DNA of 64,000 nucleotides from Mantamonas sphyraenae STR306 (taxonomy: Eukaryota > Protista > CRuMs). The notes beneath the pieces are model-generated. The model worked only from the letters and a program-made list of their open reading frames with translations, did no database searches and had not been told where the DNA came from. The position numbers and the translations under genes were made by a program. Below are positions 1,378 to 15,304 of the stretch, piece by piece (the first letter of the stretch is position 1; each line of letters begins with the position of its first letter). The DNA lies in NCBI GenBank assembly GCA_026936335.1, contig JAPMXV010000061.1, positions 186,001 to 250,000 of the forward strand, written 5' to 3'.

Positions 1378-2482
1378 TCAGCAGGTGCTGTCAATCCAGC
1401 ACAACCAGGAGCAAGTGGTGGCAGCTGCTGCTGCCTTGTCCTCGTTCTCATCGCTGACCTCGACCTTGGGCACGCGGCCGTTGAAGGCACGGGTGATGGC
1501 AATGTTGCCGTCGATGTTGGACGAGGCCTTCTTGATGGCAGCACAGTCGTACTTGCATGCAGCAAGCTTGGTCTTGGCTGCATTCAGACACGTGCTCCAA
1601 CGCGGGTGCGAATCGGTCTGGCTCTTGACCACAACCTGCTCCAGGGCGTTGTACGAATCACCGCCGACCTTGGGGCACGTTGCCTTGGCCTGCTTGCTCA
1701 GGTTGTCGCAAAAGGTCATCATGAGGGCATCGGCCTCCTGTGCATCCTCCTCTGCATCTGCATCTGCATCCTCATCCTCCATCTTGTCCTCACCCTCAGC
1801 CACGGCTGCCTTGGCCGTCTCCACCTGCGCTTCCTCTGCCTCTCCGCTTCCTCTCCACTGTCGGCCTCCTCTGCCTCCACATCGCTCATCCCATCCTCCT
1901 CCTCCTCCTCGTTCGCAAATTCATCGTCTGCGCTGTCCTCTGCGTCCGCCTCCTCCTCGTCCTCGTCTTGTTCGTTGTCCGAATCGTTGTCCTGGTCCAG
2001 GTCGTCCACATCCGTGGCCGCATCCGACTCCAGTGCCTCATCCTCGTTGCTCTCCTCCTCTGCACCCCTGTGTGTATGCCCATCCCCAACCATGTGGTCA
2101 GCCTCCCATCCTCCACAAACTCACCCAGCGTCCTGGAAAAGGGCATTCTTCGCAAGGCCCGCTTTTGCAGAGGGCGAAAAAAAACGCCACCCACACGGCG
2201 CGTGCCTGTAAAACGCGCTGTACAGCTGCACATGGGGGGCATCCGGCGAGGAACGGTGCATTCACACACGTGACACACACACACAAAGAGAGAGAGACGG
2301 ATTGTGTCCACTTACGAGTTCTCCTCTTCCTGCTCCGAAGCATCGGAAGCCACGTCCAGGTCGGACGATTCGACGTCCGCCGCAGACTCGGCCTGCGTGC
2401 TGGCTGCAGTCTCCTCCTCCGCCACAACGGCAAACACAGAGCCCGAAATCAACAAAATCAGCAGAGCAAAGGTCACACGCAT
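1378..2482 (-). CDS. Secreted acidic/Cys-rich precursor family, copy 1 (divergent; tail CSWLCWIDSTC); apparent 1-nt deletion near 1840
   Basis: Exon 1 is 2482-2316 (signal MRVTFALLILLISGSVFA); phase-2 GT-AG intron 2315-2068; then acidic tract, C-x10-CP...KLAACKYDC and the tail. The frame changes at gcggagaggcag. Confidence 0.8.
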
Positions 2483-2581
2483 GTTCCAACAAGTGTGTGT
2501 GGTTTTTTTGGTTTTGTTTGGCAAGGCTCAGGCGCCGGCGCGGAAAACCACACAAAAAAAAAGACACCCAACCACACACCG

Positions 2582-3263
2582 ATGAGAAGCACTGCCGTTG
2601 CCGCTGTCGTACTGCTTATATTGGTTGCCTTTTCTCTGGCTGCTGATGCAGACGAGAAGCAATCCGTGAGCGCAGACGAGCACCAAAAGGTCTTGGACTC
2701 GATGCTTGCCGAGGAGGCTCAACGCGCCGCCAACGAGGATGGCTGGGCCATCGAGATCCAGGACGACCTTGAGGTGCAGGATGCTGACGAACGACGCCGA
2801 GCCGGTGGCTCAACGGACATTTACGGCGCCGTGGCTGCCCAGCGCGTGAGTGGATTGGTGGCCAGCCATCACCAAGCGAAAAAAGTGCACTGTGCTCCAC
2901 GCGTCTCTTTCGTCTGCCCCTGACACACACAGGACACGCGCACACACGCAACACACACGCAACACACAGTTCTGCGACACCGTGCTTGCGTCCACGAACC
3001 CGGCGTGCCCGCAGCCGTACAGTTCCGAGTTCAACGGCCTCGTGGCCCTGGTCAAGCAGATGTACGCTGGAACGGACCCGCACTTCGTCGCCAAGGGACA
3101 GGAGGCCCAGCAGAAGCTGTCCAACTGCCAGTACCGATGCGCATACCTCCGCCGGTACAGCAGGCACTTCCGCCGTGGCCGACTGCACCCTCGCATGGTC
3201 GAGGACTCCGACGAAGATTTCGGCGGCTGCTCGTGGCTGTGCTGGATCAACAACAGCTGCTAA
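2582..3263 (+). CDS. Secreted acidic/Cys-rich precursor family, copy 2 (intact)
   Basis: Exons 2582-2845 and 2970-3263 (phase-0 intron gtgagt...cacag). Signal MRSTAVAAVVLLILVAFSLA; FC..NPACP..FNGLVALV..KLSNCQYRC; ends EDSDEDFGGCSWLCWINNSC*. Confidence 0.88.
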
Positions 3264-3449
3264 AGAACGTGCCGTCGAGAGCGAGAGCGAGGCAGTGACC
3301 CGTGCCATGTGAATGCAACCGTCCTCTTTCCCTCGCATTGCGTACACCCGTATCAACCGCCTTAGTGGTTTCCGCTGTTAGAATTTTGATTCACATTGAA
3401 ATCCATGTGGATGTCAAAAGTATTATATTGTGGTTTCAATCAAAATTTG

Positions 3450-5432
3450 TCACTCTACGTCGACGGCGTTCAACATCCACTCGACCATCTCGATGGCTTC
3501 CGCCATCTGCGCGACAGCGGCGTCAGCCCCTTCTTGCCGCGCTTCTTGGATCCATACCTGCAGCTGCTCCCACTCCTGGCGCAATGGTTCGTGCATGGCG
3601 CTCAGCTCCGCGTGCACAGCCGCCGCCGTCTCGTTGTCGCCGCTTGCCACAGCCTGTTCAAACGCCCCGCGCATCTCGCCCACCATATCTGGGTTGAACT
3701 GGCTGACAAACGCAGCCTGCTGCTGCTGGCCCTGTCCGTCTCCGCCATCTCCGCCCGCTCCATCCAGTCGAGCCAGTTCCGCCTCTGCCTCCTCGATGGC
3801 CGCCTTGATCTCCATCGCCGTGCCAAAGTCCTCCCTGTCTTTGGCATCCTGGAGTGCCGCATACATTTCGCCTAGGTTGGCTTCGATGGTGGCCCTGTAA
3901 GCCACATGCGCCTGCATGGCCTCCTCGAGCTCGGCCATGGCCGCCTTGATCTGCAAGCAGTCCTCAAAGCGATCCTGCTGCTTGGCCAGGTCAAAGTCTG
4001 CCTGCCATTCAGCCAGCAACGCCTCTGGATTGGGTGGGAGCTCAGGGAGCAGGCCAGCCGAGCCCTGTTGCAACAGGAACTGGATGCGTGCATCCAACAG
4101 ATTCAACCTGTCAGCCACCCGCCCTGCCTGCTGTTCCTCCCCTGCCAGATACAATTCCTGGTACATCGATTCCAACTCTGCCATCTCTGCCTGCAGACTG
4201 TCCACATCCCGTGCCTCAAACTCCGCCTCCGTTTCGTTCTCAAAGCCAAAGCCACCACCACGCTGCTGCTGCTGCTGCGCCTTGGCACTACGACCAGGAG
4301 GCAATGGGGGCAACTTCTTGTTGTGTGCATGCGGTGTCCCCCTCTGTGTGTTGAAGTTGTCGCCGACAGCAGCAGCAGGAGGCACTGGAGGCAGACTTTT
4401 GCGCTGTTCCTGACTCTCTTCCACCTTTTCCTTCCTGCGCCTTTCGGCCTCTTCCACCTGTCTCTTGGCCAATGCCACCACCCTCTCCTGCTCCGCTTGC
4501 TTGCGTTTGATCTCCTCCTCCCGTTTCTTCCGTTTGGCTTCCTCCTTGGCTGCCTTTTTCGCCGCCTTGGCCTCCTGCTTGGCACTCTTGCTCCGTTGCA
4601 TCTGGGCGTTTGTGTACTCCTCCGCCCTTGCCGCTGCCTCCTCCAATTCCCGCTTGCTTTCCTCCTGGATCTGCTGTGACACTGGTTCGTTCGACATGGC
4701 CCCATGCAACACTTTCGCCGCTGCCGTCTTGGGTTCATACCTGGCCACCTGTTCCTTCTTCAAACTCCACGACCTCTTCCTCGGCTTCGCCTCCCCCTCC
4801 TCCTCCTCCTCCTCCTCCTGTCCATACTTGGCACTCAGATACTGTGTCTTCTGCCCTTGCACCGATTGCCCGTTTCCGTGCATGTTGCCTGGCTTCAGGT
4901 GCTTGGATGGCACCGGCGGAGGAGGTGGCGCTGGAGCAGACCCTCCCCGCCCACCTTTGGCCGTCTCCTGCGACGGAAGTTGCACACGTGGCATGCCCAT
5001 CTGTGACGCACGCATGCTCAGTCGTTTGGGTTTCTCGGGCACCGCTGGTTTGGGGATGTCTGCCAGCACGTTGGCCAGCGAGTCGACGTCAAAGCCATCC
5101 TCTTCCGCTCCTGCTGCTCCTCCTGCTCCTCCTCCTCCCTCTTGTTCTGCCCCTTCCCATTGCCCCATCCCTCCTGAGTGTTGTCCATCCGTGTGACTGC
5201 CGATGTCATTGTCATCGTCACCAAAGTGCAATGAGGCCAACACATCGCCAAGACGGTCGGCCGTCCCTGCGCGATCTCGAGCCAGCGTGGGCTGCAGGTG
5301 GTTCAGTCGCTTGTCAAACACAGGCACAGGCGGTGCATCATCATAGCCCCCATTCGCCTCCCATTGTTCTTGTTGATGTTGTTCCACTTCCTCACTCTCC
5401 TTCAATGCTCCGACCAATGCATCCAGGTCCAT
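3450..5432 (-). CDS. Uncharacterised scaffold protein: LD-like motifs, Pro-rich motifs, coiled coil, C-terminal UVR (UvrB/UvrC)-like repeats
   Basis: Long ORF, probable start MDLDALVGAL. Several PxxP motifs. Repeats such as LQDAKDREDFGTAMEIKAAIEE and DLAKQQDRFEDCLQIKAAMAEL. Confidence 0.7.
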   Translation of the reverse strand: MDLDALVGALKESEEVEQHQQEQWEANGGYDDAPPVPVFDKRLNHLQPTLARDRAGTADRLGDVLASLHFGDDDNDIGSHTDGQHSGGMGQWEGAEQEGGGGAGGAAGAEEDGFDVDSLANVLADIPKPAVPEKPKRLSMRASQMGMPRVQLPSQETAKGGRGGSAPAPPPPPVPSKHLKPGNMHGNGQSVQGQKTQYLSAKYGQEEEEEEEGEAKPRKRSWSLKKEQVARYEPKTAAAKVLHGAMSNEPVSQQIQEESKRELEEAAARAEEYTNAQMQRSKSAKQEAKAAKKAAKEEAKRKKREEEIKRKQAEQERVVALAKRQVEEAERRRKEKVEESQEQRKSLPPVPPAAAVGDNFNTQRGTPHAHNKKLPPLPPGRSAKAQQQQQRGGGFGFENETEAEFEARDVDSLQAEMAELESMYQELYLAGEEQQAGRVADRLNLLDARIQFLLQQGSAGLLPELPPNPEALLAEWQADFDLAKQQDRFEDCLQIKAAMAELEEAMQAHVAYRATIEANLGEMYAALQDAKDREDFGTAMEIKAAIEEAEAELARLDGAGGDGGDGQGQQQQAAFVSQFNPDMVGEMRGAFEQAVASGDNETAAAVHAELSAMHEPLRQEWEQLQVWIQEARQEGADAAVAQMAEAIEMVEWMLNAVDVE

Positions 5433-5524
5433 GACGACAACTTGCGTTGCCTCCAACGACGCCCTCCCCCCCCTTCCCCTGCAATTGCATGTCAACATGA
5501 TGATGGGACATCCACACACTGTGT

Positions 5525-6208
5525 TTACTCCTGGGCAGTAGTCTCATCGTCATCCACCTCAGCCTGGAGATCCTCAGCGTCGGAATCAATGTCGCTTGCG
5601 TTCTCCTGGGTCATGGTCTTGCTTGCTGCATCCTCAGCATCCTCCTCATTGTCCAACTGCTCCTGTTCCGTTTCGGCGTTGGCCTCTGCGTCGTCCTCCA
5701 CGTCTTCAGCGTGCTCATACTCCTCCTCCTCTGCCTCCTCATCGCTGTCCAGGTCAGACTCTTCCTCCGCTGCCTGCTCCTCCGCATCAGACTCGTCTTC
5801 ATCCTCAATCCCACTGTCCAGTTCTCCCTCACTGTCACTGTCCTCCTCCGATTCCCTGCGTGTGTGTGTATGTGAGTGTGTGTGTGTTGCATGGGGGCAG
5901 GTCTTGTGTCAGGTCTACACTTCCAACCACAAAAATTCCACCTCCCCCCCATTCTTTTCCACACTCCTCCGTCACAGACACCCACTCGCCACACCGTTCC
6001 TCCTCATTGGGTTCTCAACCTACACGGCGGACTCCTGCTCCTTCTCCTCCTGGGTCTCCTGCTGGACTTCTGTCGCAGCAGGGACCTCCATCTTGGCGGC
6101 GGCGGCAGGCTCAGCCACCACTTCCGGGGCAGCAGCCTTCTCCTCCACGGCCACAGCCATGGTCACAAGGGCAATCAAGGCAACAAGGGCAATCAGCGAG
6201 CGCTGCAT
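5525..6208 (-). CDS. Secreted poly-acidic protein; precursor-family copy 3 lacking the Cys domain and tail
   Basis: Exon 1 is 6208-6024 (signal MQRSLIALVALIALVTMAVA); phase-2 intron 6023-5856 (gtaggt...cgcag); exon 2 (5855-5525) is Asp/Glu-dominated and ends DDDETTAQE*. Confidence 0.75.
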
Positions 6209-6313
6209 CTTTTTCGATGTGAGCGTGTGGTTGGATGAATGGGATTGTCTTGTTTGCTCCAGCTCACTTGCACCCTGCCCACGTTCTCCTTCTCGTTGTC
6301 CTGGCTCACCGCA

Positions 6314-6838
6314 TCACCTCTTCACCACCAGGCGCTTCATGTGCCGGATCACATCCTCGCCGTGCTTGCCCCATCGCATGGTGATGGCCACGTGGGCAGC
6401 TGTCCACTCTGTAAACAAGCAGTCGTACCTCTGCCACCCTACCCGTCTCAACCATCGTTTGATCTGTCTCAGTTCCTTCCTCAGTTCATCCGAAGAGAAC
6501 TCTTCCTCCTCCTCCTCATCACCATCATCATCATCATCATCATCACCATCACCATCCAGCTTGTTCACTTTCTCCTCTTCCCGCTCGTACACCTCACTGT
6601 GCACAATGTGTGGATGCTCCTCATCGATTCCCTTGATGTCCTCCGCCTCCATGTCCCGATACGGATTGCGGCTGCACAATGCAGCCGTGCAAAACGGCAC
6701 CTGCAGCTCCCAAAACACATTTGTGTACAGCACACGCTGTTCAAACCTTCCCAACGCCTCCATGTACGGTGATTCCGGGTGTGCCATGTGCCACAGCAGC
6801 GGTTTGCCCTCCTTCTCCCCACTGCCGGATGTTGTGCC

Positions 6839-6871
<33 letters not shown>

Positions 6872-7342
6872 CGACTCCTCCACAGACACACTGTCGGCCA
6901 GAAGCAGCTGTTTGCCTGTCTCCCCCAACAGCGAGTTGACCCACCAGTGTACGGTGTTGTTGAAATAGGTGCGCTGTGGCCTGCGCACGCCCATGTGTGG
7001 CGTCACAAGGGTGACAAACGACCCCAGCGTCACCGTGTCCAGCACTCCACGCTGCAACAGTTCCCCCATCGCATAGCGTCCATACAATCCACCCAATGAG
7101 TGACAAACCAGATCCATCTCCTCAATGCTTCCCTCGTGGCTGTCCAGCAGCGCTTCGATTTCGTCCGCCACACGCTTTCCGCCCGCGTCCACCCCGTCGT
7201 ATGTGCCCCAAAAGTACGCGTTGGACGTGCATGCATGCAGCATCACCTCGTTGCCATTGTTCCCCTCCTCAAACACACCCATCACCGCATCCCAGTCTTT
7301 CTGAGTGCCGTTCAGGCCGTGCACAAAACACACCAACTTCAT
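6314..7342 (-). CDS. DUF676/ROG1-like putative serine esterase/lipase (alpha/beta hydrolase)
   Basis: FVHGLNG, TYDGVDAGGKRVA, CHSLGGLYGRYA, TPHMGVR, GETGKQLLL, AHVAI. Confidence 0.85.
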
Positions 7343-7374
7343 TTTCGTCTGCCTCACCCTGCGCCACCTTCTCT

Positions 7375-9203
7375 TCATTGTGCCTCAAACTGCTCCATCA
7401 GAGCGGCCTGTTCGGCAACATCCACCTCGTTCACATCTACAGGGTATTCGGACGCACCTCCCCGGAAAGCTGCAACGACTGTCCCGATGTCCGGAATCGC
7501 GTCCACCAAGTCCCACAGGCGCTCCTCCTCGTCCAGTTCCTCGAATTCGTTGTCGTAGAAGTGGTCGTCCAGGTCATCTTCATCCTCCGTACCACCGTGC
7601 CCCCCGTCCCCGCGCATCGTGTCTGTCCAGGGTTCGTCAATGGGCTCCGTCAGCTCCTCGTACGGGATGCGAATGGGTGTACAGCAATTGTACAGGATGG
7701 ACACCCCCTGCACGTAGTCCAGCAGATCCCTGGGCAGCCGATCTTCCAATTGACTGTTCACTCTCTCCACGACAATCTCCTCCTCTTGCACCATGCCCAT
7801 CTCCGACTCTACATCCATCCCCATCCCCATCCTCATCCCCATCCCCATCCCCGTCTCCGTATCCATCCCCGTGTCCAAATCATAGTCGATGTCCTCTCTG
7901 TCGCCGTCCACCGAAAACGGGAGCACGTGTGCCTTGACCACCGCCGCCGCCGCAAGCTGTTTGAGACTGGGCAAGCGCACATCGTCAAAGAACGGGTGTT
8001 CCAACGCCTCGGCCGCACTGATACGATCCTGTGGTCGCATGGCCAGCAGCTTGCGTAGCAGATCATCTGCGTCTGCGTCGTCGTGCAGGATGGGCACCCC
8101 CAGGCTCATCTCCTCCTTGGGTCTCCATTTGGGAAATGAGGCGTTCCAAAACTTCAGTTTAGACACACCCGGCCAGGTGTCCTCGTTGGGTGTGCCCATC
8201 ACGCGAAAGATGCGATACAGCTGGTCGATTTGCGAGTCGCCAAGAAACACCGGGCAGCCGTTGAACATTTCGGCGATGGCACAACCGGCGGACCAAATGT
8301 CCCCGCGAGTGCCGTACTCACATTCGCCCAGGAGCACCTCGGGAGGCCTGTATGCACACGTGGTCACTGTCGGGGAGTACGCCCTGCCCCACCGTCCTTC
8401 CCGCTCATCATCCTCGTCCATGCTCATGTCCAGCGAGCGACACATGGCAAACGAGGTGAGCAACAGCCGCCCGTCGTCGCCGATGTGGCACTTGGAAGGC
8501 TTGATGTTGCGGTGCACAACCTTGATGGAGTGCAGATACTTCAGGGCACACAGCAGCTGGTACGCATAGTTCTGTGCGCAGTCACTCTGTGTGTCAATAC
8601 GCCCTGATTCACACGCTCACTCGTTCACCTTTTGCGTTGTGCCCCACCCCCCCCCCACACCTCGCACGCGCCACAAGCCACTCACCTTCATCACCCACAG
8701 ATACGCCTCGGGCGACGGCGAGATATGGTCATAATAATAGATGAGAGTGCCCAACGAGTGGTTCAGCCTCTCGTAGACGATAAACACGCCTTGCGGATCC
8801 ATGATCACCTCTTCCAGGCTGTGGGGAACGGAAAGTGCTGGGTAAGCGTGCAGATCTCGGGAAATCGAGAAACCGAGCACTTTTGGCGCCAACTGCCCCT
8901 CGGGCCTTACCTGACGATGTTTGGATGATGGGAAACCTGTTTGAGCACAGAAACTGCACGCAGCGTGGTAGGGTCGATGCCCTCCGACTCTGATTGCAGG
9001 TACTGGGCCAGTTTGAAGGAGCCGTCGTTCAAGTTTCGAGCAATGTGTGTGTGGCGCTGCTGCGTGGCCGAATGGTACCACACGTGCCTCCGTGCTTGCT
9101 CCTCGTCCTCAACCTCCAATGGAGGAAGGCGTGGCACCACATTGGCCTCCAGATACCGATTCAACACATCGCCAAACACCTCGTGCTTGGCGTACTTTTC
9201 CAT
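7375..9203 (-). CDS. CDK-like pseudokinase with acidic C-terminal extension
   Basis: Exons 9203-8911, 8818-8686 and 8571-7375. CDK C-lobe is recognisable (YRPPEVLLG, DIWSAGC, GDSQIDQLYRIFRVMGTPNEDTWPGV, RISAAEALEHPFF), but catalytic motifs read HRNIKPSK and SFA. Confidence 0.85.
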
Positions 9204-9478
9204 CTCTGCTCCCCTCACGTTGGCATACCGCGCGCAAACGCAGGTACCCACAATCGTTCAACAACATCCAACGACAGCAGCATTGCCCTTCCTTCCCTCG
9301 ACACAAAGCAAGTGGATTTCGTTGAAAAATCGGTTGTTTTCTTCCCCATTCTGCGCGTCCGCACTTCAGCGTGCCTGCTTTGCCACAGGTCGCCACCGCA
9401 AACTCCGCCTTTTGTGGGGGTGAGGGTGAATGAACGAGTGATGATCAGAGGTGACATCACATCAACGTGTGCAGCTGT

Positions 9479-10502
9479 TTAGCAGCTGTTGTTGATCCAG
9501 CACAGCCAGGAGCAGCCGCCCTGGTCCTTGTTCTCGTCCTCGTCCTCAACGGCCTTGGGTGTCCAGTCGTCATCGAGAACCGTGAGCTTGCTCCATATTG
9601 GTAATCCTGCGGCTGAAGAACTTGATCAGAGCGCAGTTGTACTCGCACTTGCGAAGCTTGTTCTGGGCGGCGAGGGCAGCGTTCTTTTCCAGGGCGGTCA
9701 TCTGGTTGGGGGCAGTGCGCAGCCTCTCCACAAGCTTCACCAGGTTGTTGAAGGCGCTGGAGAATGCCTTGGGGCACTTGGGGTTGCCGCTCACCAGGTA
9801 CTGGCAGTACTTGTTGTACGAGGAGCTGGAGGAGATGCCGAAAATGCCCTCGTTCTCCTCGTCCTGGTCCTCGTCGTCCACAGCCTTGAGACCAGTGTAC
9901 CACTGTTCCATGTCGGCGTCCACGTCGTCCTCAGAGTCGGCCTCCGACTCTTCATCGTCGTCCTCGTTGGAAGAGGCGTCCTCCACGTCGTCCTCAGCCT
10001 CAAGCTGCGCCTCAACGTCGTCGCTTTCTTCCGCCTCCGAGTCCTCTTCGTCCTCGGAAGAGTCCTCCACGTCCGAGTCGGCATCCGCCTCACTCTCCTC
10101 CTCGTTGCCATCCTCACTCTCCACCTCGCTGATATTCATGTAGCGCATTTACATGTCAGCTAACCGCGTGCGGGGCGGGCAAAACAATCGGGCCAAGAGA
10201 AAAAAAATGCTTTGCAGAGGGCCGATTTGTGTGCTTGCCAACTTTTGACCGGCGCTGGAGCACCTGAGAGAGCCCATACAAAGTGGGTGAAAGTACAGGA
10301 CGCAAGACAAAGTCGGGCGCAAAACAACCAGCGTCCGGGCACGCATGCACATGGTCCACCTCTACGCCTTGGCAACTTACGCTTCGGCAGGCGATTCCTC
10401 CTGGGCCGTTTCGGCAACAGCCTCAACCGCAGGGGCTTCCTCAGCGACTGCAACCGCAGCGCCGGCAATCAACAGCACAAGCAGGGCAATGGTAATGCGC
10501 AT
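9479..10502 (-). CDS. Secreted acidic/Cys-rich precursor family, copy 4; apparent frameshift between about 9575 and 9620
   Basis: Exon 1 is 10502-10381; phase-2 intron 10380-10129; YNKYC..NPKCP..FNNLVKLV..KLRKCEYNC. The tail EDEDENKDQGGCSWLCWINNSC* is in the +1 frame. Confidence 0.82.
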
Positions 10503-10633
10503 GGTTGGTGGGATCGGGTTTGTGTTTGCCAAGTTCGCGTGCAGGCATTCCATCGCACACACACACCTACACACACGCACAAGTGATGATGATGATGAGA
10601 GTGTGTGCAATCAATGGGGTTTGTTCACGGTGC

Positions 10634-11624
10634 TTAGCAGCTGTTGTTGATCCAGCACAGCCAGGAGCAGCCGCCCTGGTCCTTGTTCTCGTCCTGAACC
10701 ATCCATGGCACGGCCTCATTGTGCTTGGAGATCGTGCCCTCTGCGGTCATCCACGTGTCGATGCTCTTGACAGTGGTGCAGCTGTACTCACACTTGGCCA
10801 GCTTCGTCTCGGCAGCCTTGGCAGCCTTCTTCTCCAGAGCCGTCATCGAGTTGGGCTGGTTGCGCGAACGCTCCACCAGAGTCACCAAGGCGTTGAACTG
10901 CATCGAGTTGGGCGTGGGGCACTTGGGGTTGCTTGTCGTCAGCGTCTTGCAGTAGTTGTTGTACGCAGACTGGGACACAAAGTACGAGCTCAGGCCGCGC
11001 TCGTTTTCATCATCATCGCTGTCCTCCATGCCCTCATACCACTGCTGCACATCCTCATCCTCCTCCTCCTCATCCTCAGACGACTCGTCACCGTCGGTTT
11101 CGGCCACCTCGTCGGCTTCCGAGGCCTCGTCGACGTCGTCCGCGTCGAGGTCCTCCTCCGCCTCCAGCTGTGCTTCATCCTCCTCATCTTCATCCTCATC
11201 ATCCTCAGTGTCGTCGCTCTCCACCTCACTCTCAACCTCGCTGTGAGTTGTGCCATGCGTGTCCGAGGTGTCAGCGACGGCGAGAAAAAAAAACACACAC
11301 AGGAGGGGAATTTGCAAGGCGGGAGTGTGTTTCATCGCCCTCGCCTGCTCCCTACACACGCCGTATGCATCATCGAGTTGCACCCACGCATTGTCACCGT
11401 ACATGGCCACTCGATGATGCACACAACACGGGTGTAGGTGGCCTGCGCGGTGGTCAAACTCGCCCTTGGGAGAAAACGTACGCTTCCGCTTCCTCAGCAG
11501 CAGCAGCGGACGAATCCTCGTCCGCAGCCGTTTCGGCAACAGCCTCAACCGCAGGGGCTTCCTCAGCGACTGCAACCGCAGCGCCGGCAATCAACAGCAC
11601 AAGCAGGGCAATGGTGAAACGCAT
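10634..11624 (-). CDS. Secreted acidic/Cys-rich precursor family, copy 5 (intact)
   Basis: Exon 1 is 11624-11482; phase-2 intron 11481-11241 (gtacgt...cacag); YNNYC..NPKCP..FNALVTLV..KLAKCEYSC; ends QDENKDQGGCSWLCWINNSC*. Confidence 0.9.
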
Positions 11625-11732
11625 GGTTGTTCAGTTTTTTTGGTTGAGTGGCGAAGCACAGGTCTTTGCGACTCCACTCTCACACACTCACACACGCTCA
11701 ACTCAGCAAGCAAAGCAAGCAAAGCAAGCGAT

Positions 11733-12791
11733 TTAGCAGCTGTTGTTGATCCAGCACAGCCAGGAGCAGCTGCCCTCGTCCTCGTTCTTCTCCTCCTCCT
11801 GGTCCTGAACACCGCCAAAGCCGCCCCAGTCGCCGCCAGGTTGGTTGTTGTTGTTGTTGTTGCTGCTCTGGCCTGTGGTGAACACATCCATACCGTTGCG
11901 ACCAGAGATGATGTCGTAGGCATCGCTGATCAGCCTGCAGCTGTACTTGCACCTGCGCAACTTGCGCTCGGCAGCACGAGCAGCCGTACGCTCCACAGCG
12001 GTCATGCTACGCGGCTTGGTGTGCAGACGCTTCACCAGACGCACGAGCGAGTTGAACGCCCACGAGTTGGGTGTGGGGCACCTCGGGTTGGATGACACCA
12101 ACGACTGGCAGAACTGATTGTACTGCGCGTCTGTGGTAGCAAAGATGTTGAACTTCTCGCCCTCCTCCTCCTTCTCAGACACCTCCTCTTCGGCCTCCGA
12201 GTTCCACTCAGCATCGTCATCCTCCTCACTCTCGTCATCATCCTCCTCCTCCTCCTCCTCCTTCTCCTCCTCCGAGTTGTCACCTTCGGCGGCCTCCTCA
12301 GACGACGAATCCTCCTCCTCCTCCTCAGATCCTCATCCGTAAACTCGTCCTCCACATCGCTGTCAAACGCACATATTCGCCCACGGCACGTGTGTCGTGT
12401 GCGTCGTCAGAGTCAGTCTCGCTGCGCCTGTGACAAAGCAAGAAAAAACGGCGCCGTTTGCAAAAGAGGGAAATTCTGGATTTTGTGTGCCAGGTTTGCG
12501 TCCGGCCACGTTTGCCGTCGCCCACGTGACACCTGCGGGTCTGTGTCACATGCGCAGCACATCATCGGCTGGACGCTATCGATGCCCAGACGGTTGGGTG
12601 GGCGGGAAACGCAGGCAATGGGGAATGGTCACGTACAGGGCGTCGTCTTCGTCTGCGCTGTCCTCAGCAGCGGGCGCTTCTGCGTCCGCGGCCTTCTCCA
12701 CCGTCTCCGTCTCGGCAGCCGCAGGGGTCTCCTCCACGGCCAGCACAGCACCGGTCAACAGCAACACAAGCAAGGCAATTGTCACACGCAT
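11733..12791 (-). CDS. Secreted acidic/Cys-rich precursor family, copy 6; apparent 1-nt deletion near 12330
   Basis: Exon 1 is 12791-12637; phase-2 intron 12636-12360; YNQFC..NPRCP..FNSLVRLV..KLRRCKYSC; ends EEKNEDEGSCSWLCWINNSC*. Confidence 0.82.
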
Positions 12792-12886: not shown

Positions 12887-15304
12887 TCACAGGTTACGTT
12901 GCAGCCAGTCCAGCACACGCGTCTCATACTGCAGGGCATTGGCAATCTGGCGAGTGCCGTGCCGTTCGCTGGGAAACAACAAGAGATCGTAGGGTTTGCC
13001 CTTGGCGTTGAGCACCTCCAACAGCTCCGCCGTGTGTTGAAAGTGCACGTTTTCGTCAATCAGTCCATGCACAATCATCAGGCGGCCACTCTCCTCGGGG
13101 AAGCCGTCCGCGTACGACAACACGCTCCCGGCCTCGTATGCCTCCGGTGCATCCTGTGGCGTGTCCATGTACCGTTCCGTGTAGCCTGTGTCATACAACT
13201 CCCACCGTGTCACCGGCGCACCCGACACCGCCGCCCGGAAAAAGTCGGCGTGCTGACACATGGCCATCAGGGACATGTACCCACCGTAGCTCCAGCCGTT
13301 GACGGCAATGCGTTCAGGGTCGACAAAGCCACGCGTGGCCATGAGGTGTTTGAGGCCCGTGATTTGGTCGTGCAGTTCAAAGGTGCCCATGGCTGTGCGA
13401 AGGTGGCCCTCAAAGGCCAAGCCACGGTTGTTGCTACCACGGCCGTCGATGCACACCACAGCGTAGCCCAGGTGAGCCATGGCCTGGAAGCGCATGAGAC
13501 GAGGCCACATGAACGTGTCTCGCACGAGTTGCACGTGGGGTCCGCCATAAATGTACAGCAGTGTGGGCAGGGCCGCCGCCCCGTCATCCACAACGTCCTC
13601 CTTGCCTCCAGGCAGCAGGTACCAGCCGTGGCACGTGTCGCCGTTCTCGTTGACAAAGTCAAACAGGTGCGGGGTGTGCACGTCAAAGGATTGGGGCCTG
13701 GTGAGTTGCACCTGATCCTGCAGCGTCCACAACGGGGTGGCAGCCGACGAGGCATCCTCCGCAGAGGGAAGTTGCATGAGAGCACACACAGGCGTGTCGG
13801 CCAAGGTGGAGTACACTGTGGCAAACAGGGTGGCGTCGTCCGGGTTGTTGAACACCACCCCACCGTGATCGTAGGCCGCATTGGTCAACAGCTGCACCGT
13901 TTGCGAGCCATCCAAGGGACTGCGGTACACATTGTTGCGCAACACAGAGTCTCGCGTGGCCGAATACACCACCGCCGTCCCTGCGTCACACAGGGCCACG
14001 GGTGCATCGTTCACCTGCCACTCACCACTCGTCACCTGCACCGGCTCTCCCTTGACCACGGAGTCGCCTCCGCTGGCATCCAGATCCAACTCTTGCACAT
14101 ACAGGTGACGGAATCCCGTGCGTTCGCTGGCAAACAACAGTCGCGGCGTGTCTCCCGGAATGAAGCGCAGCAAGTCGGTGACGTTGTACCACAGCTCCGT
14201 GTTTTCCTCCAACACCGTGCGTGGGTTCACCAACGCCCCTCCCTTCACATCCACATCCCACACCACAACCTCCATGTGTTGTTGCTTGCGGTCCAGAAGC
14301 TGTGCCCACACACGTGTGCCGTCGGGGGTCCAGCCAAGACGAGGAATGTACTCCACCCACCCGTGCGTCTCCTCCAACGGCTTCTCCGTGGCCAGGTGAC
14401 ACACAGACGATGCCAATGCGTCGAAACAGGCCACATGCAACGAGGACACGGCGTTGGGTTCCCCTGCCTGCGGGTACCGGAACACATCGGCATTCCCCGT
14501 GTGGCCCACTTCCGGGATCGCATACTTGGGCACCGCTGTTTCGTCTACACGCACATACAGCATGCGATACGCTGTGCTGCTTGCATCCTCATCGCCATCC
14601 TCATTGCCCCCGTTGCTTCCGTGCACCACAGGGCACCAGTAGTAGCCTGTGAAGCGGTCAAACTCCTCCTGGATGATAAACTCGGCCACGCCTGCCGTGA
14701 TTCCCTGCGACGCATCCTCCTGGGTCAATGCACTCGTGACACCGTTGTGCTCCACACACACGTTGCCATCCACAATGTAGGACAGAAAGTGCAGGTCGGG
14801 GCTTGCGTTCAGATCCAGGCGGGTGCGTGCCTCTGCTCCCAAGGCCGCAAAGGACAACGGTCCAACGCCATCATGCTCCGCCACACTGGCACTGTACACC
14901 GACGAAGAGTGGCTCAGCACCATTTGGTCTCCTTGCATGAAGAAGCCTGTCACGCCTGTGTTGGACACCGACGCACCACGCATCCGTTCCCTCATCAGGA
15001 TCTCCTCCTTGCTCAGAGCAATCTCCCGGCCCTCGTTGCCTGCCTCGTTCTGCACCGATGCAAACTCAAACCACGGTGCCACTTGTGCGGTGTCGTCTGC
15101 AGACGAGGTGGAGGCGGACGAGGAGGAGGGCGTCGTTGCACAAAACGCGGAACGCTCACCCTTTGCAGGACGGCCCATGAAGTACACAATGGGCTTGCTG
15201 GGATGGATGTGCAGGCTGGATGGGATGCCTGCCACCCCGCGGGATGAAAGCATCTCTGCGAGCAGTGCCTTGGTGTTGGTCTTGGATGATGATGAGCTCG
15301 ACAT
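12887..15304 (-). CDS. DPP9: Dipeptidyl peptidase 8/9-like (S9B), no signal peptide or TM anchor
   Basis: QEEFDRFTGYYW, YGGPHVQLV, GWSYGGY (Ser), YDTGYTERYM, HGLIDENVHF (Asp), ERHG (His). Confidence 0.9.
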   Translation of the reverse strand: MSSSSSSKTNTKALLAEMLSSRGVAGIPSSLHIHPSKPIVYFMGRPAKGERSAFCATTPSSSSASTSSADDTAQVAPWFEFASVQNEAGNEGREIALSKEEILMRERMRGASVSNTGVTGFFMQGDQMVLSHSSSVYSASVAEHDGVGPLSFAALGAEARTRLDLNASPDLHFLSYIVDGNVCVEHNGVTSALTQEDASQGITAGVAEFIIQEEFDRFTGYYWCPVVHGSNGGNEDGDEDASSTAYRMLYVRVDETAVPKYAIPEVGHTGNADVFRYPQAGEPNAVSSLHVACFDALASSVCHLATEKPLEETHGWVEYIPRLGWTPDGTRVWAQLLDRKQQHMEVVVWDVDVKGGALVNPRTVLEENTELWYNVTDLLRFIPGDTPRLLFASERTGFRHLYVQELDLDASGGDSVVKGEPVQVTSGEWQVNDAPVALCDAGTAVVYSATRDSVLRNNVYRSPLDGSQTVQLLTNAAYDHGGVVFNNPDDATLFATVYSTLADTPVCALMQLPSAEDASSAATPLWTLQDQVQLTRPQSFDVHTPHLFDFVNENGDTCHGWYLLPGGKEDVVDDGAAALPTLLYIYGGPHVQLVRDTFMWPRLMRFQAMAHLGYAVVCIDGRGSNNRGLAFEGHLRTAMGTFELHDQITGLKHLMATRGFVDPERIAVNGWSYGGYMSLMAMCQHADFFRAAVSGAPVTRWELYDTGYTERYMDTPQDAPEAYEAGSVLSYADGFPEESGRLMIVHGLIDENVHFQHTAELLEVLNAKGKPYDLLLFPSERHGTRQIANALQYETRVLDWLQRNL

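Follow-up and report, generated by a model that had tools for sequence, protein, structure and literature searches.

Several described systems resemble parts of the gene family reported here. The secretory tailpiece of IgM and IgA and the T peptide of acetylcholinesterase are tails that drive disulfide-linked assembly and thiol-based quality control. The saposin-like (SAPLIP) pore formers, represented by amoebapores and naegleriapores, have six cysteines in a fixed pattern, form three conserved disulfides and match the Pfam family SapB. In toxin and peptide precursors the signal and pro regions are conserved and the product is variable, and in bacterial double-glycine leaders Gly-Gly is an accepted cleavage context. 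Small secreted cysteine-rich families specific to one lineage are also common in protist genomes. Here, we analyzed a stretch of 64,000 nucleotides from the genome of Mantamonas sphyraenae (C61:186001-250000, hereafter the window; positions count from its first letter unless C61 is given). It holds five (A-E) of six clustered genes, the sixth (F) lying outside. The six share one architecture, are restricted to this single cluster, have no detectable relatives in the libraries covered, and end in an 11-residue tail that is conserved at the protein level behind a fast-evolving cysteine domain. New here are the sixth gene, two intron classes and three reading-frame changes. We present the six genes as a well-documented orphan family rather than as the discovery of a mechanism, and the functions that we propose for them are candidates.

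CRuMs, the supergroup to which Mantamonas belongs, is deep-branching and barely studied, and to our knowledge almost nothing is known of what these cells secrete or of how they handle prey, stick or glide. Mantamonas itself is a free-living marine gliding flagellate and a voracious bacterivore (PMC10492846). The diploid genome of M. sphyraenae was sequenced with PacBio RS II reads, assembled with FALCON into 78 primary contigs (25.06 Mb, GC 59.19%) and polished with Racon and Pilon (PMC10492846). The assembly that we searched comprises 25,061,354 bases in 78 contigs, and all genome-wide scans covered the whole of these ~25 Mb. Across the cluster region, GC is about 0.57-0.60.

Six genes in one cluster

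A six-frame scan of the window found the pattern C-S-W-L-C-W, four residues, Cys and stop in exactly five places. They belong to five two-exon genes whose starts and stops agree with the DNA, which bears out the five genes and the shared architecture given in the initial annotation. A whole-genome protein search then supplied a sixth copy, 4.8 kb upstream of the window start, and the family is as follows.

Gene A: 1378-2482, minus strand, two exons, with a frame change
Gene B: 2582-3263, plus strand, two exons, intact
Gene C: 9479-10502, minus strand, two exons, with a frame change
Gene D: 10634-11624, minus strand, two exons, intact
Gene E: 11733-12791, minus strand, two exons, with a frame change
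Gene F: C61:180552-181235, minus strand, sixth copy, intact, outside the window

Whole-genome pattern and profile searches agreed on exactly these six genes, one more than had been annotated, all within 18 kb (C61 180.5-198.8 kb). The loose DNA pattern C-x-W-L-C-W has 28 occurrences genome-wide, and its reversed control has 5. Of those 28, none that lies outside the cluster continues as x4-C-stop in a plausible gene, so the tail pattern is not a chance occurrence. The pattern W-x-C-W-x4-C-stop gave only triplet-repeat and out-of-frame matches elsewhere in the genome. When a profile of the domain and tail (alignment A1) was run over the genome, it recovered the six genes and one weak match on C39, which we rejected as a seventh member because it lies antisense to a real gene.

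The order of parts is the same in all six: signal peptide, Asp/Glu-rich stretch, four-Cys domain, variable linker, acidic spacer, tail and stop. All N-termini are hydrophobic and resemble signal peptides, with a mean Kyte-Doolittle value of 2.4-2.8 over residues 4-19, so that secretion, as first annotated, is likely. The domain follows C-x9/10-CP-x39-42-C-x-Y-x-C, and its four cysteines are invariant in all copies. Domain and tail together contain seven cysteines, an odd number, in B, D, E and F and eight in A.

Three shared elements were recovered independently by a repeat finder: the signal exon of A, C, D and E (repeat family D5); the tail, present in C, D and E and in inverted orientation in B; and, for C and D, a 5' block of 112 nt (D7). 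The DNA of the signal-peptide exon of gene A is 70-72% identical to those of C, D and E. Genes C and D form a mosaic: about 80 nt of exon 1 are 100% identical, identity at the tail is 95%, and between these two parts it is 40-75%. The firm part of our interpretation is that the six are real genes of a tandemly duplicated, lineage-restricted family, whose products would enter the secretory pathway. As a side observation, A and B, the most divergent paralogues inside the window, stand head-to-head, with 99 A/C-rich nucleotides between their start codons (2483-2581), a spacing that suggests a shared bidirectional promoter.

Search for relatives and predicted fold

All searches and folds used single exons or open pieces as queries rather than joined spliced proteins. 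Against Pfam, five exon pieces gave only sub-threshold low-complexity matches such as Nop14, and no family reached the cut-off. A word-based search of 5.8 billion proteins returned no match, as did an exact look-up of the protein of a neighbouring gene, a profile (hidden Markov model) search of 1.84 billion cluster representatives returned zero at E<=0.001, and there was no usable match for D or B in the ESM Atlas and none among PDB sequences. In a metagenome collection the strict back-translated tail pattern had 0 matches. The loose tail pattern had at least 120 in the metagenomes, and all those inspected among the matches listed were TG-rich or out-of-frame junk. We also observed that introns and untranslated regions often contain CA/TG-rich runs resembling microsatellites (e.g. 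2270-2300, 10560-10580; L005:2560-2640), and these lead to more chance matches to TG-rich (Cys/Trp-coding) DNA patterns.

The libraries searched evidently lacked this genome's own proteins, and the transcriptomes of M. vickermani and M. plastica fell outside their scope. The sequences thus appear to have no detectable relatives in the libraries covered, and a restriction to the species would go beyond that scope. Within it, the description as an undescribed protist family, with no match to a known structural or housekeeping family in sequence or fold searches, has held.

To the folding program AlphaFold2 (AF2) we gave an alignment of the six sequences. For gene D it predicted four helices (residues 2-12, 23-37, 44-59 and 64-76) with a core pLDDT of 71-86, a mean pLDDT of 70, a pTM of 0.65 and a disordered linker. 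The model of F has the same three core helices, with helix 1 cut by the exon boundary. In both subfamilies, introduced below, a core of three to four helices at pLDDT 70-86 is followed by a linker and tail of low confidence. Foldseek found no match in the PDB at E<=0.001. A wide scan with VIA-align reached a best Z of 5.8, for generic helical repeats, which is below the tool's own meaningful level for helical proteins. On these models, the domain would be a small helical bundle, presumably held by two disulfides, with no recognisable relative. The helical core, proposed from single folded pieces, thus came without a specific fold match.

An invariant tail behind a fast-evolving domain

The tail occupies the last 11 residues and follows C-[SG]-W-L-C-W-[IV]-x3-C-COOH in all six genes. 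Its sequence is identical in B, C, D and E; the variant in A ends in IDSTC, and that in F reads C-G-W-L-C-W-V-N-N-S-C. Six positions (C1, W3, L4, C5, W6 and C11) are kept in 6/6 genes despite synonymous codon differences in A, B and F, and these differences mean that the peptide itself is constrained and that gene conversion alone does not account for its constancy. Both ends of the protein are constant, while the folded basic domain between them evolves fast. Its dN/dS is 0.59 for C-D, 0.45 for C-E and 0.86 for D-E (GC3 about 0.8), and the identity of domain plus tail to D drops to 35-43% in A, B and F. The W-L-C-W of all six tails fits the W-x-x-W consensus of C-mannosylation. Pfam Dpy19 (PF10034) had no match in the genome, but in an exon-by-exon search whose controls also went undetected.

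An invariant tail joined to a fast-evolving domain is the reverse of what is typical of toxin and peptide precursors, and this speaks mildly against the release of a C-terminal peptide. In alignments A1 and A2, no dibasic or other shared sequence motif is conserved at the boundary between acidic region and domain or before the tail. Neither observation supports the processing into one or two released products that the initial annotation had envisaged. Its suggested roles in prey killing, as extrusome cargo or as a pheromone are candidates. Because of this reversed conservation and the lack of a shared cleavage motif, we tentatively interpret the tail as a handle common to the family, which would serve in sorting, anchoring or disulfide cross-linking, and not as a released product; we consider this reading credible, though a little short of probable.

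If the tail is such a handle, the signal peptide would be cleaved on entry to the secretory pathway, and the disordered polyanionic stretch may keep the protein soluble or condensed on the way out. The tag would then be recognised by a common machinery or a common partner. It could direct the protein to a secretory or digestive compartment, anchor it at an interface through Trp/Leu/Ile, or serve, via the odd (seventh) cysteine, in covalent cross-links or in oligomer formation. The variable, mostly basic domain might meanwhile engage diversifying external targets, most plausibly the surfaces of bacterial prey or the substrate.

Several points weigh against a handle. In pattern searches of the genome the tail was found on no unrelated protein, and this confinement to the family counts against a general sorting signal, which might be expected on other cargo as well. 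AF2 modelled the tail of D and F at low confidence only, and the GG that directly precedes it in four genes is also compatible with cleavage. Furthermore, with frame changes in three of its six copies, the family may be decaying in part, and the gene models, the splicing and the secretion are deduced by sequence logic.

The main alternative, which we consider unlikely, is a peptide precursor. Here the 11-mer would be cut off after the acidic spacer and GG and closed by a disulfide to act as a pheromone, toxin or other signal, with the helical domain as a second product or a carrier. The tail is indeed the most conserved element, B, C, D and E encode an identical peptide, and in the models a flexible linker and tail stand apart from the helical core. 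Directly before the tail stands GG in B, C, D and F, with an acidic spacer upstream, but it is GS in E and TT in A, and no basic or other known eukaryotic convertase site is conserved. Each protein, moreover, contains one core without repeats, conservation runs opposite to that of known precursors, the four-Cys domain is itself conserved, which would be needless for a mere carrier, and none of the neighbours looks like a dedicated processing enzyme.

Whether handle or peptide, the tail could represent an undescribed type of C-terminal signal or product in eukaryotes; this broader proposal we regard as doubtful. In one form it would be a tag for sorting, anchoring or cross-linking that defines a compartment for secretion or a coat on the surface in the deep-branching CRuMs lineage. 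In the other it would be an excised peptide, cyclised by a disulfide and encoded identically by four genes, which acts in a free-living flagellate as a ribosomally made signal or toxin. A compact family that combines a constant C-terminal tag with a basic domain evolving fast lends itself to further work, since it offers targets for antibodies and mass spectrometry and a short tag that can be moved onto reporters.

Charge of the acidic stretch and the cysteine domain

A, C, D and E have a very long acidic stretch, and that of B and F is shorter. The net charge of the large exons is -37 in C, -46 in D and -33 in E, and that of exon 1 is -10 and -11 in B and F. The Cys domain has a net charge of 0 in B, +3 in A, +5 in D, +6 in C, +11 in E and +13 in F. 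The domain had been described as cationic, which holds for C, D, E and F, but only weakly for A and not for B. It had also been proposed that an acidic propiece masks a cationic core. The order of the parts is present, but the fit is loose, with -33 to -46 per large exon against 0 to +13 in the domain.

These charges bear on two further explanations. In the first, an antimicrobial-type proprotein, the polyanion would neutralise a membrane-active cationic helical domain that kills or lyses bacterial prey once released, either in the phagosome or extracellularly. The host is a voracious bacterivore (PMC10492846), the domain reaches +5 to +13 in four genes, and its fast evolution is typical of proteins facing other organisms. 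By analogy, the succession of signal peptide, anionic region and basic, disulfide-stabilised helical domain recalls the logic of defensins and amoebapores. Nevertheless, we consider it quite unlikely. The domain of B carries no net charge and that of A just +3; the acidic charge exceeds what neutralisation needs several-fold, and no cleavage site is conserved. There is also no saposin or defensin signature and no fold match, and the invariant tail is left unexplained.

In the second, the Asp/Glu stretch would be the working part of a matrix or adhesion modulator. It might bind calcium or act as a condensing partner for polycationic secreted proteins in vesicles, or serve as an anti-adhesive that aids release from the substrate during gliding, with the Cys domain and tail docking and cross-linking it. 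The strong negative charge of the large exons of C, D and E would suit such a role, and an odd cysteine count suits intermolecular disulfides. In B and F, however, the acidic region is short and yet domain and tail are kept, which makes the polyanion the least conserved part of the protein. With no evidence for a partner either, we see this explanation as fairly improbable.

Gene structure and frame changes

Gene models were built from a three-frame reading of each locus against the DNA, with the following exons for the genes in the window.

Gene A exon 1: 2316..2482, minus strand, signal peptide and first acidic stretch; phase 2, GTAAGT donor
Gene A exon 2: 1378..2067, minus strand, acidic region, Cys domain 1543-1710 (with an extra fifth Cys), tail 1381-1413 (ends IDSTC), stop 1378-1380
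Gene B exon 1: 2582..2845, plus strand, signal peptide and moderately acidic region; phase-0 GTGAGT donor
Gene B exon 2: 2970..3263, plus strand, starts F-C, Cys domain 2973-3140, basic linker, acidic spacer, GG, tail 3228-3260, stop 3261-3263
Gene C exon 1: 10381..10502, minus strand, signal peptide and acidic start; phase-2 GTAAGT donor
Gene C exon 2: 9479..10128, minus strand, acidic region, Cys domain 9633-9806, tail 9482-9514, stop 9479-9481
Gene D exon 1: 11482..11624, minus strand, signal peptide and acidic start; phase-2 GTACGT donor
Gene D exon 2: 10634..11240, minus strand, one open frame with polyacidic region, Cys domain 10778-10951, linker, acidic spacer, GG, tail 10637-10669, stop 10634-10636
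Gene E exon 1: 12637..12791, minus strand, signal peptide and acidic start; phase-2 GTACGT donor
Gene E exon 2: 11733..12359, minus strand, acceptor homologous to C and D, polyacidic region, Cys domain 11937-12110, long Asn/Gly linker, tail 11736-11768, stop 11733-11735

The genes fall into two intron classes. A, C, D and E have in common a phase-2 intron after the signal/acidic exon, with GTAAGT or GTACGT donors. Its acceptor CAG is followed by the base that completes the codon and then by E/D-V-E (C, D and E) or Gly-Ala-Glu (A). B and F have a common phase-0 intron directly before the first Cys, and also a DGWA-x-EI motif in exon 1. Intron positions are homologous within each group and the GT..AG sites are canonical; the two layouts indicate that the family consists of two old subfamilies, A/C/D/E and B/F.

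The initial annotation had ascribed introns and frameshifts to the genes. Introns are found in all of them, but frame changes only in A, C and E, each of which needs one in exon 2; B, D and F read through. The breaks are located as follows.

Gene A: frame change at about 1840-1850
Gene C: frame change within 9573-9625
Gene E: frame change at about 12327-12335

We rejected small introns in place of these breaks. In A and C there is no plausible GT..AG pair of workable length at the break, and in E the sole frame-keeping acceptor, at about 12220, is implausible and lacks a pyrimidine tract. The changes may be mutations, may belong to one allele of the diploid, or may be polishing errors in paralogous low-complexity DNA. 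That the cluster is decaying, its recent duplicates being lost and without a present role, is very improbable: the frame changes in A, C and E and the D-E dN/dS of 0.86 would fit, but three copies (B, D and F) have no break, errors of assembly or polishing (PacBio RS II, Racon, Pilon) may account for the changes in the others, and tail and four domain cysteines persist in every copy, through synonymous changes and across the deep split between B/F and A/C/D/E.

Neighbouring genes

The neighbours of the cluster are a C48 peptidase, an unannotated 689-residue protein, a DUF676 esterase, a protein kinase and a DPPIV/S9 peptidase. They are ordinary, and nothing among them suggests a dedicated processing partner. 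The last of them (12887-15304, minus strand) adjoins gene E and is an intron-free gene of 805 residues with DPPIV_N and Peptidase_S9 domains and without a signal peptide; it is a tempting candidate for a processing enzyme, but no evidence links it to the family. Between B and C lies the 689-residue frame (3450-5519, minus strand), which is partly Glu/Lys/Ala/Gln-rich and helical-looking and partly proline-rich, has no Pfam match and is apparently unrelated.

A small two-exon gene at 5525-6208 (minus strand) begins with a segment resembling a signal peptide (6020-6208), and its second piece (5525-5701) is acidic throughout, with no Cys domain or tail. It was rejected as a family member, since BLASTP against one exon 1 of the family gave no alignment and Pfam was blank. 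Three long antisense or overlapping frames on the plus strand (1385-2923, 5298-6968 and 12899-15247; 512, 556 and 782 aa) are of low complexity and rich in Ser/Leu/Arg. We rejected them as genes; they are by-products of GC3-rich coding on the other strand.

Comparison with known systems

Two known classes were discarded. A CHCH (twin Cx9C) hairpin does not apply, because the domain has one C-x9/10-C and one C-x3-C and the proteins bear an N-terminal signal peptide. Granins and similar acidic cargo of regulated secretion were set aside for want of a Pfam match and of conserved dibasic sites.

Bacterial double-glycine leaders, as in class II bacteriocins, resemble four of the six genes in having GG before a short Cys-rich C-terminal core. 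The present family, however, is eukaryotic, has an ordinary signal peptide and replaces GG by GS or TT in two copies, and no C39-type peptidase lies in the neighbourhood. Bacteriocin cores differ from one another, whereas the core here is invariant, and compared with double-glycine or RiPP-like (ribosomally synthesized and post-translationally modified peptide) precursors in general it is the upstream part that varies.

Precursors of the alpha-defensin type have the same order of signal peptide, acidic region and basic disulfide-bonded domain, and their basic part likewise evolves fast. In contrast to them, the domain of this family is predicted to be helical and not beta-sheet, has 4 Cys instead of 6, and is followed by an extra invariant C-terminal tail; the family lacks a conserved maturation site, its acidic charge is far above the basic one, and no sequence or fold similarity was found. 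SAPLIP pore formers are comparable as small, secreted or vesicular, disulfide-stapled helical proteins of bacteria-eating protists that are sometimes made as larger precursors. They differ in that the domain here has four Cys (spacing 9-10 / 39-42 / 3), with no SapB_1 or SapB_2 match and no saposin among the fold matches.

A further comparison is with C-terminal cysteine-bearing tailpieces, namely the IgM/IgA tailpiece and the acetylcholinesterase T peptide. There is no homology, and the tail of this family packs three Cys into 11 residues. By analogy, however, it resembles them as a short, conserved peptide at the extreme C-terminus, with aromatic residues, a near-terminal cysteine that may be unpaired and, in most copies, an N-x-S sequon.

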